Shown: in pieces, positions 28,564 to 39,361 of the stretch | Numbering within the stretch: the first letter of the stretch is position 1 | How the letters are laid out: every line of letters starts with the position of its first letter | Assembly: GCA_048013815.1 (NCBI GenBank) | Contig: CM106586.1 | Location: 5,890,001-5,954,000, forward strand | DNA from: Setoptus koraiensis | Taxonomy: Eukaryota; Animalia; Arthropoda | Direction: 5' to 3' | DNA: 64,000 nt | Program-made: the position numbers and the translations under genes | The notes under the pieces: generated by a model | Seen by the model: the letters and a program-made list of their open reading frames with translations, nothing else | Database searches by the model: none | What the model was told of the DNA's origin: nothing

Positions 28564-31500
28564 TCGGCCGATTACGTGCCCGTTACAATATTCATACTTG
28601 ATGGTGAACAGTTAATAGTTACGCAATTAATGCATACGTTTGCCCATTCATGTTTGCAAACGCCAGCAAGCCAACACGTTGCCGTGTATGTGTGATTGTC
28701 ATTTTTGGTGTCGTTTAATTATCGCAAATTATTACTCGCACTCATTACAACGAGTACGAGCGCCAACAACGAAACGCGGTGTCGCCGTTGAGTGACGGGC
28801 CGTGATTGAGTTGCTCTCACACAGCGCCCATGCTCACGACAATGCCCACACAACAACACTAACCGTTAGTGACTAACGAGCCAACGCGAGCTAATGCGAC
28901 AAGTGGCCAGCACAAACAGTCAGAAATTCACTGCTGTTTGTCAGTCAATTTGCACGCTCACAGCAGCGAGCGACATTGCAAACATGCCGCTTTGATAATC
29001 AAATTGATCAATGACCAATACAAATCACGACAAACCCACGAGCTGGCCAGCGCGGCCAATCCAACAATGTCAACAAAGTCAATAAGGCCAATAGAGTCAA
29101 CAAAGTCAATGGAGTCAACAAAGTCGATGGAGTCGCTGGAGCGTGACACCGTGATCGCCGGCTACCGTTTAATAAACGGCGTTTATGCGCCCGATAATCG
29201 ATTGTGCGATCCATGTATCGCTACCGGATGAAGTTTAGCCCACAAATGAATGTGTGAATTTATGGGATAAATTGGCGAGTGGCGCAACAAAAGTGGCGCC
29301 ACTTGGCCGGCATCATTAGCATAACGATGCACGCATTGCATAATTTGTCCAGTTGCTGGGCCGGCCAGCGGACAGGTGCGCTGATAGATCAGATACAAAT
29401 AGATCAGATCCGATCTGATCTGATCTGATCTATTTGTTTGTTTGTTTGTTTGTTTGGGATTGGATCGTTGCTGACAAACGAGCAAGAGTGTGTTGCATCA
29501 TACAAACAATGCACAAAACAATTGCTGCTGCTGCTGGTGCAGTGTTAATGCAATAACCTGTCGGTGCCGTTGCGACCGACTGTCGGACAGGTGAAACGAG
29601 CAACGCCGATGGTTGCAGCTTGCAGTGGTCGCACGCCGACCAGTGTCGCTGTCGGGCATGCCGAGTCGGCTGCTGGCCGTTCTCTGCTGGCCGTTCGCTG
29701 CTGACCGCTCGCTGCTCAGCGTTCGCCGTTCGAAAGTGGCCGTTCGAAGCCCGAACTTGGAAGCGATAGAGTTCGGAAACGAGCGGCGCCGATAATTGAG
29801 AGCGCAGCGCTCGCGGCTCCGGCCAATCCTAGCCAGTGCGTGCGTGTGTGTGTGTGTGCAAACAACAGGTGCCGTGCAACGATTGCGAGCGGCGTGTAAT
29901 AGGCGCATCCGAACTCTGGACTGCGGCGGCAACAATTGCGCAATAGCAGTAATTGGCGCAAGCGCGATGGCAAATGATAATAATTAGCGTTGTCGGTCAG
30001 CGGCAACAGCGGCAACAACGCCAACAACAACAGCAACGCCAACAACAACAGCAACGCCAACAACAACAGCAACGCCAACAACAACAGCAACGACAACAAC
30101 AACAATGCCAACAACATCGGCAGCGTGCCCATTGCGGCTCCGTGTCTTTGGTGGACTGTGCACAATCTATACAATGCGCAGTCTGCAGCGCAAGCGTTGC
30201 CTGCCGGTCGAGCGGAAAAATGTCTATTTTTCAGCTATTATCCTGCGCATATCACAGGATCGGGTATTACGTAACACCAGAGCCAGTGCGTTTGCGGCAG
30301 CAGCAACAATGGCAACAACAACGCCAACAACAACGCCAACAACAATGTTGCCAAAACTGGCCGCCACCCTGGCCAGTGTGGCCAGTGGCGCCGTTGCCGC
30401 CAGCGCGGACCCTAAACGATGCTGCGATGCGGATGCTGGCGCGCTTCTTCTCTTTCGCAATCATCCCTTCTCGAGATCATCCCTTCTCGAGATCATCCCT
30501 TCTCGAAATCATGCCAGTTCGAGAGTGTGGCGAGCATCTGCGAGCAATGCGTCCACTGTTTGTGAGCAAAGTGGCTCAAGGCTCGATGGCCGCGATTAGC
30601 CGCGCGCCGCGAATGAACGCGAACAAGTTGCACGCACATCTAATTATTTACCTTGATCTGGCCAGCTTCTGCTTCGGTTCGTCTGGATGCAGCTGCCGCT
30701 TCTTTTTCGGGCGATATCTCCGTTGCTTGTTTGCCGAATAATTGTTAGTGGCCGGCGAATGTCGAAGGCTCGCAGTGCCAAGTTCGAGCTGGCCACTGGA
30801 AGTGACCAGGTAAACGGATCAGAGCCGCATCAGCCACTGGCCAGTGTCCATGGCCGTGCCACACAATCCATGGCGGCCGTACAATATACGGCTCATAGTA
30901 TACGGCTCATAGTATACGGCGTATTGTGCGGCGCAGAGCCAGAAGAATGGGAGCAGCAATTGTGAGTGTGTGAGAAAGCGTGATTGACCTCGTGGCGTAA
31001 TGCAACCATTGCATGCCGCATAATCACCCAATCAGCTAGTTATACGGTCTTATGCGGCCTTATATCCGCCTCGACATCGCCGAGTCGGGATGCCGGCCCC
31101 AACGCTGCCGAGTCAACAGCGACAACCGACAGCCACAACCGACAGCGACAAACGCAACAAACGGCGACGGAGCAAACGAAACAATGAAGAACGAAATGTC
31201 TCTCCAGTGCCGTGATTTGCTGTTTTGTGCGCTCGTTGGCCGGCCTGACGTGACGGCCGGCAGTGCAGAAAATCGCCAACACTGGCGATGATGTGTTTGT
31301 GTGTCCCAAATTAATTGTGTTGCAACAATGTAACACAAACAGGATGCCAACGACAACCACAATCGCCGCTATCAACTCGACGGTATCAAGTGGCCTAAAC
31401 GACCGCCAAAACGGTGGCCTAAATAAACAAACACCGGTGGTCCGCTTGCGAATTGTGCGAATATCTCAATGCGCCAACAAATGCAACAAGCAAATCCAAA

Positions 31501-33457: not shown

Positions 33458-34483
33458 ATGATATTTCTAGATGATTATTTTGAGTCCATTGAATATGTAC
33501 CCATTGAGCTCAGACAAGGTTTTACATCCATACGGGAACTGGATTTGCAGGTTCACAATGCCATGGACTCGTTGGGAAAAAATTTTAAGGAATTCTTCGA
33601 TAAGGTACATACACTGACACCACAACAGAAACAAGACCAATACAGTAATTTGTTAGTTAAATGTGATGAAGTTATGACTGCCGCTAGCGACAAGGTACGT
33701 GTCGCAGATAGTCTACATGAACTAATTGAAAAATGTCGACGCCATTTAGACATTGGCCTGGAAAAGTTGCGCGAGGACCTCAAGGACGGCGATAAGGCCG
33801 ACATTATTGAAGAATTGGAGAGGCGATCTAAAGAGGAAGATGATCTTTATCAACAACAACAAGAACAAATGATTGCACAACAGAAACAACTGCAGAAACA
33901 ATTGCAACAGAAACAACAACAGCAATTAGCATTATCGCAAACCTCATCCAGAGCGCAAAATAACACTACAACAACGAAAAATACTACTAGCTATAAAAAT
34001 CTGCTGAAATCGTCACAATCGCTCAGGAAAGCCGATGCCAGACGACAATCGTGCCACCATATTATTACATCGTCAGGTGACAAACATACACTTGTTCGTC
34101 CGTCAATCAATAACAAACAAACCCCATCTAATCAATCTCAACTATTCAATTTAGAAACGGAAGTTACAAATGTTAATAAGCTAGCCATTGGTGACCAGCA
34201 GTTGTTGCGCAACTCGCAAAATACTTCTGTCACAAACTTGGAACAACAACAACAACAGCCATTAGGTCGCCAATCATCTCTGGCGTGCAATCGCGCAACA
34301 GCAGCAAATAATAATAATATAGACAGCGGCCCAGTAACAACGGAACAACAAAACAGCATACAACAGCAGATAACACCACAGTGTACGACCCCAATTGTGG
34401 TTGTTGGAAACAAAACAGGCGTCGATCCAGACCCCAGCAAAGTCTTCAGAGAACAGGTGGAGCCCGCGGTCACACAAGATTGG
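33458..34483 (+). CDS. ING3: Inhibitor of growth protein 3-like, exon 1: ING N-terminal helical domain, poly-Q, then a Rhes-derived segment
   Basis: MIFLDDYFESIEYVPIELRQGFTSIRELDLQVHNAMDSL...DKVRVADSLHELIEKCRRHLDIGLEKLREDL...IIEELERRS matches the ING3 N-terminus (MLYLEDYLEMIEQLPMDLRDRFTEMREMDLQVQNAMDQL...). Donor TGG|GTGAGT at 34484. Confidence 0.92.
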
Positions 34484-34762
34484 GTGAGTAGCTCGAACGC
34501 AAACACTCGTTCATTCTTTTGTTTGTCAATCTGCTCCAATTTCGCTCAAGTATATGAAAATCTAATCAAAATACTTTCCGTCTCACATACAAACAGGGTG
34601 TCTCTTTGGTTGATTGCCCAACCAAGGAAGACACAAACATCAATTTGGTCTTTCAGGAGTTGCAGGCTAGGGCACGCCAAAAATTAAGTGATATTGTCAT
34701 TAGCAACAATCAACAACGTAGACAATCTCTGCCAGGCCATGAGGTGCTATCCAATCAACATG
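34009..34762 (+). repeat. Left arm of a long inverted duplication (Rhes gene fragment copied into ING3)
   Basis: Reverse complement of 36541-37304. About 45 mismatches over about 626 aligned exonic nt (about 93%, hand count); includes a homologous intron. Confidence 0.97.
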
Positions 34763-35134
34763 CTTCCTCTAAAGCTTACATGATGAATAGTTCCATGATT
34801 CACGGGCAGACTAATCTGGTGCAAAATTCTCCATCATCGGCCGCCCACCTACATTGTCATGATCCTATTGTTGCTGCAGCATCTCAGGCAATAAATGCTA
34901 CTCAACAAATGCAACATGGACGCCGGACATCTAGCTTAAAGGCCAGTTACGCCGCCGTCAATTCAGGCGGCCTACAAAACATCTCAAGTGGATTGTTGGC
35001 ACCATCCCAACAGCAGTCACACCAACATCATCACAACCTCCAACAACAACAGAAAGATGGTAGCCCTAACACCAATAATCCCCTATCGACATTCAACTAT
35101 CATCCTTACAATCAAGAAACCTTAAATCATCAAG
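34597..35134 (+). CDS. ING3: ING3-like exon 2: Rhes-derived degenerate G5 segment, then the ING3 central motif
   Basis: Acceptor aaacAG|GGT at 34596 is phase 0 and in frame. Contains PIVAAASQAINATQQMQHGRRTSSLKASY, matching ING3 AAAQAVQATAQMKEGRRTSSLKASY. Donor G|GTAAAA at 35135. Confidence 0.82.
34761..34819 (+). repeat. 59-bp direct repeat, copy 1 (splice acceptor plus AYMMNSSMIHGQTNL)
   Basis: 53/59 identical to 35268-35326. Confidence 0.93.
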
Positions 35135-35267
35135 GTAAAACTGACCCCACAAAAGTTTCACCCAGTCTACTAGCTATTCATAATTTGGTCAAGTAGCTTA
35201 ATTTTTTTTTTCTTCATCTCTGAACTTTTTTACTGTATTCAATTTCAATACCATAAAATTCTTCGCC

Positions 35268-35326
35268 TGCTTCCGTTAAAGCTTACATGATGAATAGTTC
35301 TATGATTCATGGACAGACTAATTTGG
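35268..35326 (+). repeat. 59-bp direct repeat, copy 2 (functional acceptor of ING3 exon 3)
   Basis: 53/59 identical to 34761-34819. Confidence 0.93.
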
Positions 35327-35841
35327 AAAATAATAGAGTCCCACCGTTACACATATCACTCAAAGGACCCCGTGCCATTAAGAAGCTCAAACAGCAACAA
35401 GAAACGTCGCCCAATGGCGGAGTATACACTTTTGAAGATGTCGAAGGCGACTCGTCCTCTCATTCGCAATTATTTAGTTCCGCCCTTGGATCGCCCAGAA
35501 CACCTAAACAGACAACATTCGATGTGAGACAGCCAGTGTCAATGAATATGAATCATCATCTGATGGGAGACAATAATCAACGGATGATGATACACAACCA
35601 TCAAGGCAGCGGTGGAATAATAATGTACGACGGAGTTGGCGGCGGCAGTGGACTAATTCCATCTAATGAGGTATATTGTTATTGCAGAAAAATAGTGTTA
35701 GGTGCTGATATGATAGGTTGCGACAATCCAGATTGTTCAATTGAATGGTTTCATTATGAGTGTGTCGGGATAACAACGCCACCAGAGGGAAAATGGTATT
35801 GCGACGCCTGCAAAGCTGACCTGGCTTGTAGATCTCAATGA
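35282..35841 (+). CDS. ING3: ING3-like exon 3 with C-terminal PHD finger
   Basis: Acceptor ttaaAG|CT at 35281 is phase 1 and in frame. YCYCRKIVLGADMIGCDNPDCSIEWFHYECVGITTPPEGKWYCDAC is a C4HC3 ING-type PHD finger. Stop at 35841. The three exons total 2124 nt (707 aa). Confidence 0.9.
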
Positions 35842-36263
35842 GACGAGATGCAAAAACGACGAAGACTACTATCGATTGATTAATTGACTTGCGCGTTGCG
35901 CAAGATATGATTAGATTAAATACTATCAGTTCAGTTATTGAGTTAGCTTATACCACCATCATGACTAAATCTAACGCTGCTTCATATTGGTAGCCTCATT
36001 GAATTATGCCAAAACTGTATTACTATACTCTTGTTAGAGCTAATCAGCTCAGGTGAGACCAAGCGACAAACTGAGAAGAGCGAGCTGATTATACACGTCT
36101 ATCGAACCGTTAGTCATTTGATAAGCGTGTAGGTGTTATATGTACAATTTTAATTTTCTTTACAAACAAATCGACCGACCAATTACTAGTTATTGTAGTC
36201 AGTTGGTCACTCTTTTTTGACAACCATTACATTTGATATATACACTATCGTCTCGTCGTTTCT

Positions 36264-36269
36264 TTTATT
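36264..36269 (-). terminator. Candidate AATAAA polyadenylation signal of the Rhes-like gene
   Basis: TTTATT on the plus strand, about 165 nt downstream of the stop at 36434. Position only. Confidence 0.35.
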
Positions 36270-36433
36270 TGACGCAATTTGTTTTTACAGTAACAATATT
36301 GGTAACAATGTCGTCTTGTACTATTGTTGTCGCCCCGGGATTTGCTTTGTCATAACAGACAAAACATTGTGTACTGAAGAGCGATGCAAATTGATATTGG
36401 TGCCTCCATTCAATTAGGTAATTTGACTCCCAT

Positions 36434-36712
36434 TTAAGATATAACACAATTGTTTAGCTGATTAGCATTGGCGGCCGTCGTATCTTGCTTGTTGTTGTGT
36501 CTATTGCTGTTCAATAGGCTAATGTTTCTCAATCCTTTAACATGCTGATTGGATAGTACCTCATGACCAGGCAGAGATTGTCTACGTTGTTTATTATTGC
36601 TAATGACAATATCACTTAATTTTTGGGGCGCCCTAGCCTGCTTGAGCAACTCCTGAAAGACCAAATTGATGTTTGTGTCCTCTTTGGCTGAGCACTCAAC
36701 AAAAGAGACGCC
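36434..36712 (-). CDS. RASD2: Rhes/RASD-like small GTPase, last exon: G5 (ECSAK) and CAAX box (CVIS)
   Basis: Acceptor aaacAG|GGC at 36713. [26 protein letters not shown]...NNCVIS*. Confidence 0.9.
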
Positions 36713-37304
36713 CTGTTTGCAGGTGAGTGGCAAGGTTTTAGTGTGTCAAGTAGGTAGTAGTTTAGTTAGATTTAGTTATTGGCTCGAGATAAATTGGAAC
36801 AAGTTGACAAAAAATGATCGATTGTTTGCATTTGAGCAACTCACCCAATCTTGTGTGACCACGGGCTCCACCTGTTCTCTGAAGACCTTGATGAGGTCCG
36901 GATCGACGTCTATTTTGTTTCCAACAACCACAATTGGCGTTGTTATCTGCTGTTGTATGCTGTTTTGTTGTTCCGTTGTTACTGGGCCGCTGTCTATATT
37001 ATTATTATTTGCTGCTGTTGTGCGATTGCACGCCAGAGATGATTGACGACCCAATGGCTGTTGTTGTTGTTCCAAATTTGTGACAGAAGTATTTTGCGAG
37101 TTGCGCAACAACTGCTGGTCACCAATGGCTAGCTTATTAACATTTGTAACTTCCGTTTCTAAATTGAATAGCTGAGATTGATTAGATGGGATGTGCTTGT
37201 TATTGATTGACGGATGAATAAGTGTTTGGTTGTCACCTGATGATGCAATTATATGGTGGCACGATTGTCGTCTGGCATCGGCGCTCCTAAGCGACGGCGA
37301 TGAT
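36541..37304 (-). repeat. Right arm (donor copy) of the long inverted duplication
   Basis: Matches 34009-34762 in inverted orientation. Confidence 0.97.
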
Positions 37305-37680
37305 GATGTCCGACGCGATTGATTTGACCTTGTTGTTTGTGAAATATTGTCGCTGTCGGCGGTTGATCGATTACTTCCGGTTGCCAGTTGTTGTTGTTGT
37401 TGTTGTTGTTGTTGCTGTTGTTGCTGCTGCTGCAGATACTGTTGCTGTTCCTTTTTTTCCTCTAATATTAATTCTCTTAATTGTTTCACTTCTTGCCAAG
37501 ATCGTGCATCTTGAACAGAGTATACTAATATAAAGGCGTCGCCCTTTTTAATAGACAATTTACGCATGGCAGGAAATTCAAAAGTGCCCGAAGTGTCCAA
37601 TATCTCGAGATATATCTCGCCCATACCGGGTATAATGTATTTGTTACTGTGCAGTTCCTCCACGGTGGGTTTGTGCGTGT
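36845..37680 (-). CDS. RASD2: Rhes/Dexras (RASD/Di-Ras family) small GTPase, internal exon: G2-G4 with an insertion of about 170 aa; 5' exon(s) not located
   Basis: Branch-like CTAAC and acceptor gcaacAG|AC at 37681. PTVEELH (G2), LEILDTSG (G3), [19 protein letters not shown] (RASD/DIRAS hallmark), [10 protein letters not shown] (G4). Donor TGG|GTGAGT at 36844. The exact paralogue name is tentative. Confidence 0.88.
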
Positions 37681-39235
37681 CTGTTGCACGTGGCCAGCAC
37701 GTTAGCATCATGATGATCATTAGCATGCGAGTTGTTGTTGTTGTTGTTGTTGCATCGTGTGGTTGTTGCGTATTGTTGTGCACAGGTGATTTATTTGGCA
37801 TTTATCACGTCATCGAGGGGCGCGCGAGTTTATTCGGATGCAGCATCGCACAATACACGATTATACGCGCGTTTCGTGTATATAAAATAGAGTTTGGTCG
37901 CATTATATGGTTGTGGTTGATGCAAGTTGTTGTTGTTGTTGTTGGACGTAACAACATGGTGAGTGCGGGCGCGAGTGTGGGGATATATAGATTAAGACGT
38001 AGGCTGGTTAGTATTAATGGTTTTTGGGGGCTACATTTTTGTCGGTCGCTTGCTTGTTGGTCGCTCGCTCGTTGGTCGCTTGCGAGAATCGGCATTGCGC
38101 GCCGGGCAAACGACAAATTTTGCAGTATTGTTTGTAAGTGACATTTGAATTTGCATGCAATTCGAGCATTCTCTCGAAGCGGACGCAGCACCCCCATGTT
38201 AATCATGACAATAACCGATTAGCGAGCGCAACAAAATTAGTTAGCGGCACTCGAAGTGCCGCTCTAACGGTTACACTCCAACCGTTACAGTGTGACCGTT
38301 AGAGTATTCGTACACGGACTCGCCCGTGTATCGTGGGCTCACCTGTGCAGCGTGGGCTCACCTGGCCACACGGTGACCGACAATGCACGGTGGTCATGGT
38401 GAAAAAGAAAAGTGTACACTGTGTGCACTATGACCATCATCAATATTATCATCATCACCCGCACACTGTGGCGCGCTAATAATAATGATGATGTAATAAT
38501 GATTGTGTTGCGTTGTTGTGTCGCGTGCAAAACGACACACACACACACACGCCAAACAAGGTGAGCAGTTGTTATTTGGGCTTGTTGTTGTTGGCAGCTA
38601 GGCGCATGCACCGGGCCAGTTGTTGTTGTTGCTGCGCTCAAGAACAAAACACAGACAATGATGATGTAACAGCTTGCCAATGGCCGGCAATTGGTCGTGT
38701 GTTCAACATACGCGCCCAATGGAATACGAGAAATGGAAAACTAGCAACAAAGCGACAAACACACACACACACACAAAAGTGACAAGAGAAACAAGAAACA
38801 AGTGGCAAGAAAAAACAATGGCGACAGGTGAACCTGGCCACAGTGGCGCCCAAACTGGCGAGCCGTTTTGAGCTGGCTGCATTTGGCCATGAGTGAGATA
38901 AAATTTGGTTGTTGCTGTGACTGGTTCGGGTGCCGAGAAACTCAATTATCTATTTGAGCTGATTCGGTTGGTTTGGATAGCGCATTGATCGTGATTAATG
39001 GTGATTAGATCGTGATCAGACGGCAATTGTATTTCTATTGTGATTATATTGTGGTCAGACATTGATCGATTGTTAGAATTGGCTGTCGCTGTTTGCTTGA
39101 GTTATTATTGATAAGATGATGGCTTGGCTGAGCCGGCGACAGATAGCGGCTAACGAGCGCAAAAAGAATTGCAAACAACGCAAACACATCCTCGTCTCAT
39201 GTGACGCATCAATAAGTTTCTATTAGATCAGCTCG

Positions 39236-39361
39236 TATTTGACAGTTGCTATTTGACAGTTGCTATTTGACAGGTGCTATTTGACAGGTGCTATTGGACA
39301 GTCACCATTGGTTAGTCACCATTGGACAGTTACTACTGGACAGTTACTATTTGACAGTCAC
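39236..39361. repeat. Tandem repeat, 14-bp unit TATTTGACAGTTGC x9 (degenerate)
   Basis: Nine contiguous, stepwise-diverging copies. Confidence 0.9.

Follow-up and report, generated by a model that had tools for sequence, protein, structure and literature searches.

In the genome assembly of Setoptus koraiensis (GCA_048013815.1), a 64,000-nt stretch of contig CM106586.1 (positions 5,890,001 to 5,954,000 of the forward strand) was analysed as a whole and is referred to below as the window, with positions counted from its first letter. It carries two convergent genes whose stop codons lie 592 nt apart: an ING3 gene on the plus strand and a gene for a Ras-family GTPase on the minus strand. An inverted repeat of coding sequence reaches into both of them and encloses their 3' ends. 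The initial annotation had taken this repeat as a potential invertible switch that exchanges the PHD finger of ING3 for the prenylation tail (CAAX box) of the GTPase.

The hallmarks of ING3 are found in three exons of the plus strand (Table 1). The N-terminal ING domain matches Pfam PF12998 (E=1.6e-18, residues 3-104 of the open reading frame (ORF) of exon 1), the central motif GRRTSSLKASY is shared with 16 of 16 orthologues in a comparison set of mite ING3 proteins, and the C-terminal PHD finger scores just short of the curated Pfam cut-offs (25.8 versus 27 bits for PF23011 and 23.4 versus 24 bits for PF00628), with exons searched singly and not joined into spliced protein models. Exon 1 ends in a phase-0 donor (TGG/GTGAGT). 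Reading frame, splice signals and a layout conserved in the outgroup contig L001, described below, suggest that exon 2 would be spliced to exon 3. Two linker motifs, which occur in 14 and 15 of the 16 mite proteins, are absent from the ING3 exons of the window.

By its sequence motifs, the convergent gene would encode a Rhes/RASD-like member of the Ras family, with G2 to G5 and the CAAX box CVIS recognizable and G1 lying outside the detected exons. The last exon matches positions 135-160 of the Pfam Ras profile. Searches with the large exon used a query (36833-37678) that included four intron codons at its end; the closest solved relatives are Rap2A and Di-Ras2, database relatives are often labelled Rhes or RASD, and mite relatives also have the long insert. 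Motif searches of the window's minus strand revealed no P-loop (G1) exon, nor did tblastn with the orthologues from Sarcoptes and Dermatophagoides, both of which have the P-loop GSSAVGKT; the first exon is more than 26 kb away, too diverged for detection, or missing. Among these relatives, the Sarcoptes scabiei protein P0044 (460 aa, with a Ras domain and GSSAVGKT) is named 'ubiquilin-1 isoform X2' in its source, apparently a misnomer.

Table 1. Features of the ING3/GTPase locus. Positions are those of the window; identities of the inverted pieces are between the two arms, and L001 is the outgroup contig
Feature	Position	Strand	Description
ING3 exon 1	33458-34483	+	ING N-terminal domain, short low-complexity stretch, captured GTPase-derived codons from ~34012; open ORF
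Captured intron	34484-34596	+	113 nt, GT..AG; copied with the GTPase exons
ING3 exon 2	34597-35134	+	G5-derived piece, 59-nt patch, central motif; phase-1 donor at end
ING3 exon 3	35282-35841	+	PHD finger; stop 35839-35841
ING3-side arm	34012-34762	+	Inverted copy: distal insert and G4 part, whole intron, G5 part of last GTPase exon
59-nt patch	34761-34819	+	90% direct-repeat copy of ING3 exon-3 acceptor and first 45 nt; source 35268-35326
Spacer	34763-36540		Between the arms: remaining part of ING3 exon 2, intron 2, PHD exon, intergenic 592 nt, GTPase tail
GTPase last exon	36434-36712	-	G5 (SAK), conserved C-terminal stretch, CAAX box CVIS, stop 36434-36436
GTPase intron	36713-36844	-	132 nt; source of captured intron
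GTPase large exon	36845-37680	-	G2 (PTVEE), G3 (DTSG), long low-complexity insert, G4 (NKID); Pfam Ras E=4.2e-13
GTPase-side arm	36541-37304	-	Source copy; sole copy found in L001
Inverted piece 1	34009-34254 / 37059-37304		92%
Inverted piece 2	34245-34375 / 36941-37071		98%
Inverted piece 3	34370-34519 / 36809-36958		85%
Inverted piece 4	34570-34663 / 36646-36739		85%
Inverted piece 5	34662-34762 / 36541-36641		92%
Gene-conversion tract	34142-34375; partner ~36941-37171	+	234 nt; includes identical runs of 95 and 80 nt
L001 642-1162	33427-33950		Same strand in L001 and window
L001 2197-3385	34810-35947		Same strand in L001 and window
L001 3538-4894	36074-37414		Same strand in L001 and window

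A repeat search resolved the inverted repeat into five collinear pieces, which together form two arms of ~750 bp each with their inner ends 1778 nt apart. Pairwise alignment of the arms gave 90.3% identity over 781 columns, with 71 mismatches and 50 gap columns. The remaining inverted repeats of at least 80 nt within the window are all CAA-type low-complexity sequences of 100 nt or less, so the arm repeat is far beyond chance. The same peptide is obtained from both arms when each is translated in the frame of its own gene, and the intron ends GTGAGT..CAG are retained in both. The geometry described in the initial annotation (inverted arms, a gap of 1778 bp, the same reading frame in both convergent genes) was thus reproduced by repeat search, alignment and translation, and the ORFs and Pfam matches agree with its account of the spacer as containing the ING3 central motif and PHD finger together with the CVIS tail of the GTPase.

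Public sequencing runs were consulted in the form of 16 Logan k-mer contig sets, four of which (X2, X3, X4 and X7) were examined closely. X3 and X4 appear to represent one data set: they come from different studies and organism codes and have near-same record counts and identical contigs. X7 is transcript-like, its contigs falling on exons and leaving intron 2 and the intergenic sequence uncovered. Contigs of this kind break at the identical runs 34171-34207, 34325-34346 and 34634-34659 and at their partners. In the DNA contigs of X2 and X3/X4, the private variants of both arms were matched with zero mismatches and at flank-like depth, and the spacer is spanned from end to end by a single 2042-nt X2 contig (34634-36675), again with zero mismatches. 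Inverted duplications are a known artefact of long reads, and a chimeric or fold-back read might in principle have created a false one here. Against such an origin, the arms are 10% apart and differ by six indels, and an RNA contig of X7 contains the ING3-side variants; given these variants and the private variants of both arms in independent DNA runs, an assembly artefact is rejected, its probability being negligible.

The direction of copying can be read from L001, a 4894-nt contig of one Logan sample that served as outgroup. A word search with the exon-1 ORF led to a 669-aa protein on this contig, 97% identical in the ING domain. L001 has the identical convergent gene pair in the identical spacer orientation; its PHD exon is collinear with that of the window at 88%, and its GTPase likewise ends in CVIS. 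Two differences stand out. Nothing in the window corresponds to a segment of 1034 nt (L001 1163-2196) that encodes the canonical ING3 linker, and the only match to the ING3-side arm in L001 is the GTPase gene, in reverse orientation. Because the ING3 gene of L001 has the canonical linker and only the GTPase arm is found there, the inverted copy is a derived feature. The donor is the neighbouring GTPase gene, and the arrangement is derived with respect to both outgroups, L001 and the 14 to 15 of 16 mite ING3 proteins with a canonical linker. Judged by this comparison, ~1 kb of canonical ING3 linker has been replaced in the window lineage by the inverted GTPase copy and the 59-nt patch. In the captured arm, the GTPase motifs have eroded: NKID now reads NKTG and SAK reads PTK, with frame and splice signals kept. 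When the chimeric exon-2 ORF was used in a word search, the matches were confined to central-motif fragments of ING3 from other arthropods and included no further chimeric ING3, in a collection that apparently does not include the window's species.

When the window is compared with L001, the scar shows three junctions. The first, from ING3 into the inverted GTPase copy, falls at ~34000-34012 in low-complexity sequence. The second, from the copy into the exon-3 acceptor patch, has the microhomology TG (34761-34762), and the third, from the patch back into ING3, has the microhomology ACTAATyTkG (34810-34819); the patch is thus located between the inner arm end and the resumed ING3 sequence. Serial template switching, as described for microhomology-mediated break-induced replication (MMBIR) and fork stalling and template switching (FoSTeS), leaves several junctions, short patches templated nearby, inverted orientation and microhomology (PMC2621351). 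Because the scar combines multiple junctions, nearby templated patches, inversion and microhomology, serial template switching is proposed as its origin.

According to this model, the large ING3 exon would have been under repair or replication when synthesis switched template three times. The first switch would have led to the convergent GTPase gene on the opposite strand, from which ~750 bp were copied, comprising part of an exon, the entire intron and part of the last exon. The second would have led to the ING3 exon-3 acceptor, adding 59 nt, and the third back to ING3, with the net replacement of ~1 kb of canonical linker. The captured patch may have been in frame by chance, or may have survived for being in frame. 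As seen today, the captured intron is spliced out, the chimeric ING3 is expressed and maintained by selection, and the GTPase motifs within it have decayed; gene conversion has since exchanged at least one tract of ~230 nt between the arms. With a probability of about 0.8, we consider the inverted repeat to be the footprint of one multi-junction, template-switch-like event, that is, a by-product and possible substrate for non-allelic homologous recombination (NAHR), and not a demonstrated switch.

The copied exon-3 acceptor itself (TGCTTCCTCTAAAG, window 34761-34774) is now internal to ING3 exon 2. Its use with the phase-0 donor at 34483 would shift the frame and lead to an early stop, and it could represent a 3' splice site, either cryptic or regulatory. 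The only RNA contig across TGCTTCCTCTAAAG reads straight through, with the acceptor unused.

Expression of the chimeric gene is documented by that contig, a 602-nt X7 sequence that joins 34482 to 34596 with zero mismatches, skipping 113 nt bounded by GT..AG. It covers 34342-34482 and then 34596-35056, crossing the inner arm end into unique ING3 sequence, and the same joint was seen in none of the DNA runs. Further X7 contigs lie on exon 1 (33781-33978, and 34077-34304 in the outer arm), on the PHD exon (35360-35802) and on the last exon and 3' side of the GTPase gene (36316-36559). A chimeric transcript thus exists, in the form of partial contigs extending up to 35056.

Lineage-specific changes were assigned to each arm with the aid of the outgroup. 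The ING3-side arm has 12 synonymous and 16 non-synonymous changes (omega 0.38, P=0.012 versus neutrality), and the GTPase-side arm 8 and 5, respectively (omega 0.18, P=0.0025). Measured against L001, omega rises from 0.02 in the N-terminus of ING3 to 0.08 in its central part and to 0.11 in the PHD exon, at dS values of ~0.5-0.6. The indels between the arms are 3, 12 and 6 nt in the coding parts, all multiples of three, and 5, 2 and 22 nt in the intron, none of which is. Taken together, these patterns argue that the captured codons are under coding constraint. An alternative would be that the chimeric ING3 is decaying or redundant, with a canonical ING3 elsewhere and the open frame of the arm left by chance. 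The loss of both conserved linker motifs and the decay of the GTPase motifs are in line with this proposal; it is nevertheless unlikely, as it conflicts with the omega of 0.38 in the captured codons, the confinement of frame-keeping indels to coding parts, the omega of 0.02-0.11 elsewhere in ING3, and transcription with correct splicing. Since the gene is transcribed and spliced, its captured codons appear constrained and the rest of it is strongly constrained, the chimeric ING3 is most likely a working gene.

Outgroup polarity shows that 12 nt were deleted from the GTPase copy and 6 nt from the ING3 copy. The first of these deletions removed four codons (PQCT/PQWT in the ING3 copy and the outgroup) from the GTPase just before strand beta-5/G4, at 36941-36958 opposite 34376-34387 of the ING3 copy. 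By this polarity, the deletion postdates the capture, and the ING3 copy keeps the older state at this site.

The divergence between the arms is unevenly distributed. In the 234-nt conversion tract, they differ at 4 of 213 sites (1.9%), and each differs from the outgroup at 43 and 39 sites, respectively (18-20%). In the outer coding part (34012-34141), the arms differ from each other by 13.8%, and each from the outgroup by 13.8-14.6%. The tract departs from the other coding parts, which have 41 arm-arm versus 55 outgroup differences, with a Fisher P=1.8e-5, and the two identical runs are longer than random placement permits (run-length permutation P=0.001 and <1 in 20000). This indicates that the arms have recombined since their origin, at least without crossover. 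Because the arm-arm divergence in the tract is far below the divergence from the outgroup, homogenisation of the ~230-nt tract would have occurred late, much later than the capture, which appears nearly as old as the split from the L001 lineage. A past flip followed by a flip back with reciprocal exchange was also considered and rejected, on the grounds that the decayed motifs and the excess of amino-acid changes fall on the ING3-side arm alone in every segment.

Since the conversion tract shows that the arms meet in recombination, a crossover that inverts the spacer is mechanistically possible, and to this extent the recombination envisaged in the initial annotation is plausible. Its prediction that such a flip would yield two in-frame proteins was also borne out in silico. 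After reversal of 34763-36540, the ING3 exon runs in frame into the CVIS tail, and the GTPase exon extends, also in frame, into the central motif of ING3, with a donor towards the PHD exon. The frames are compatible because the copy was exonised in the frame of its source. With 90.3% identity between the arms, 98% within the 234-nt tract and identical runs of 95 and 80 nt, the flanks are of the kind that supports NAHR, at the low end of reported human cases.

In the assembly and in L001, a single orientation of the spacer was seen, the ancestral one. The contigs of the four runs contain no strand-changing joints, with the reservation that a crossover within an identical run of at least 31 nt produces no new 31-mer, so that k-mer contigs are blind to a flip within the 95- and 80-nt runs. 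X7 has contigs for the ING3 N-terminus, both parts of the ING3-side arm, the central motif and the PHD exon, and none for the GTPase 5' exon or for the GTPase-side arm beyond 19 nt, a pattern of presence and absence that, taken in bulk, agrees with the standard orientation. Pfam domains of recombinases or transposases were not detected in the five other ORFs among the nine of at least 180 aa between 20000 and 52000 (a set that also includes ING3 and the GTPase), about 14 kb either way, a search that split eukaryotic genes may escape. Short specific inverted recombination sites are not present at the borders, which consist of 750-bp diverged copies of gene sequence.

These observations bear on the proposal that the arms act as a flip switch, in which germ-line or somatic inversion of the 1.8-kb spacer would produce membrane-targeted ING3-CAAX and chromatin-targeted GTPase-PHD proteins as a regulated or maintained system. 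The proposal draws on the in-frame products on both strands, the recombination of the arms since their origin, and known inversions mediated by inverted repeats with intragenic breakpoints, such as HsInv0241 (PMC3961182) and the yeast flip/flop region (PMC9731477). It is weakened by the single, ancestral orientation, by the 10% divergence of the arms with a longest identical run of 95 nt, by the lack of a detected recombinase, and by purifying selection on both genes in the standard arrangement; an accidental origin suffices to explain the repeat. On a flipped chromosome, moreover, ING3 would be left without its PHD finger and the GTPase without its CAAX box. The tail-exchange system of the initial annotation therefore finds no support, and a maintained or regulated form of it is very unlikely. 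If flips occur, they would probably be ordinary NAHR inversions, rare and harmful, that hit both genes at once; rare events of this type are possible. Because the arms still recombine, flips might be frequent enough to show in populations or tissues, which is very improbable; some chromosomes or cells would then make an ING3 N-terminus fused to a farnesylation tail and a Rhes-like GTPase fused to the central motif and PHD finger of ING3. If true, a chromatin reader and a membrane GTPase would naturally exchange tails in the nuclear genome of an animal.

A role at the RNA level may also be envisaged, whereby a read-through RNA from either of the two genes, containing both arms, folds into a ~750-bp duplex and leads to co-regulation of ING3 and the GTPase through small interfering RNAs or editing. 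Convergent genes with inverted arms and 592 nt between their stop codons would be suited to it; nonetheless, X7 has no contig over 35805-36305 and the arms show no A-to-G type differences, and such a role must be rated as very improbable.

Several points weigh against reading the repeat as the footprint of one template-switch-like event. The outer junction (~34000-34012) is low-complexity, and its microhomology could not be defined. L001 is treated here as the orthologous locus in a sister species (dS ~0.5-0.6) and could alternatively represent a paralogous segment within the same genome. When the PHD ORF of the window was looked up exactly, it had no record in the collection that holds L001's sample, which speaks only indirectly against paralogy, and the corresponding look-up of the L001 PHD ORF returned L001 only; the polarity of the capture is independent of whether L001 is an orthologue or a paralogue. 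RNA contigs cover neither positions 33979-34076 of exon 1 nor the junction of exons 2 and 3. Finally, the orientation in individuals lies beyond k-mer contigs, and flips at low or even moderate frequency may occur.

Elsewhere in the window, a 262-aa ORF lies upstream of ING3 (29953-30741), next to CAA-type tandem repeats, and has a weak match to PF10238 (E2F-associated phosphoprotein C-terminal; E=0.002, below the cut-off). About 1.5 kb beyond the large GTPase exon, a tandem array at 39229-39358 consists of ~8.8 copies of a 14-nt unit, TATTTGACAGTTAC, with 86% matches.

In its origin, the locus may be likened to the products of FoSTeS/MMBIR, with which it shares several junctions, nearby templated patches including an inverted one, microhomology, and combined deletion and insertion (PMC2621351). 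The known examples are for the most part human disease alleles that arose de novo, whereas here the product is found in every sample examined, is expressed and is maintained by selection, and the mechanism is deduced from the scar rather than observed. In its present state, the locus resembles pairs of a gene and an inverted partial pseudogene, such as IDS and its pseudogene or F8 intron 22 (PMC12632684, PMC11610362). The inverted copy at this locus is, unlike the silent pseudogene or intronic repeat of those pairs, a translated part of a second gene, and both flip products would be open. In the IDS and F8 systems, a crossover between the gene and its nearby partial inverted copy inverts the interval and disrupts the gene.

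Other parallels concern the inversion itself. On yeast chromosome XIV, a coding inverted repeat homogenised by conversion also encloses an invertible segment (PMC9731477); however, that repeat is 4 kb long, nearly identical and made up of whole paralogous genes, with both orientations documented, whereas the arms in the window are 0.75 kb, 90% identical and situated within two unrelated genes, with one orientation seen. In the human polymorphism HsInv0241, inverted repeats mediate an inversion whose breakpoints fall within two genes, so that these exchange parts (exon 1 of AQP12A/AQP12B; PMC3961182). Its partners are near-identical paralogues and the exchange is almost neutral, whereas a flip here would swap a PHD finger for a prenylation tail.

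The model of the initial annotation comes closest to bacterial invertible switches and shufflons, in which inversion places alternative 3' ends behind a fixed 5' part by means of a dedicated site-specific recombinase and short specific sites. To our knowledge, no inversion switch of the bacterial type has been described for nuclear genes of animals. The likeness extends to that model only, and because neither of the defining features, a recombinase and short specific sites, was found at this locus, it is not to be regarded as a programmed inversion switch. For the invertible-switch claim as originally put, the result is mostly negative.

By analogy, then, the locus would be best described as MMBIR/FoSTeS-like in origin and as a gene with an inverted partial copy in its present state. 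Three features set it apart from these known kinds, namely a translated, selected copy within an unrelated gene, short arms that are 10% diverged, and a single known orientation. A single multi-step copying error would have rebuilt a conserved chromatin gene, in which ~1 kb of linker and two mite-conserved motifs were replaced by reversed exons of a neighbour together with a working intron. In the resulting layout, one crossover would be enough to exchange, in frame, the functional tails of two genes that are not related, and the locus offers a simple test case for the inversion rate of short, diverged inverted repeats in an arthropod genome.

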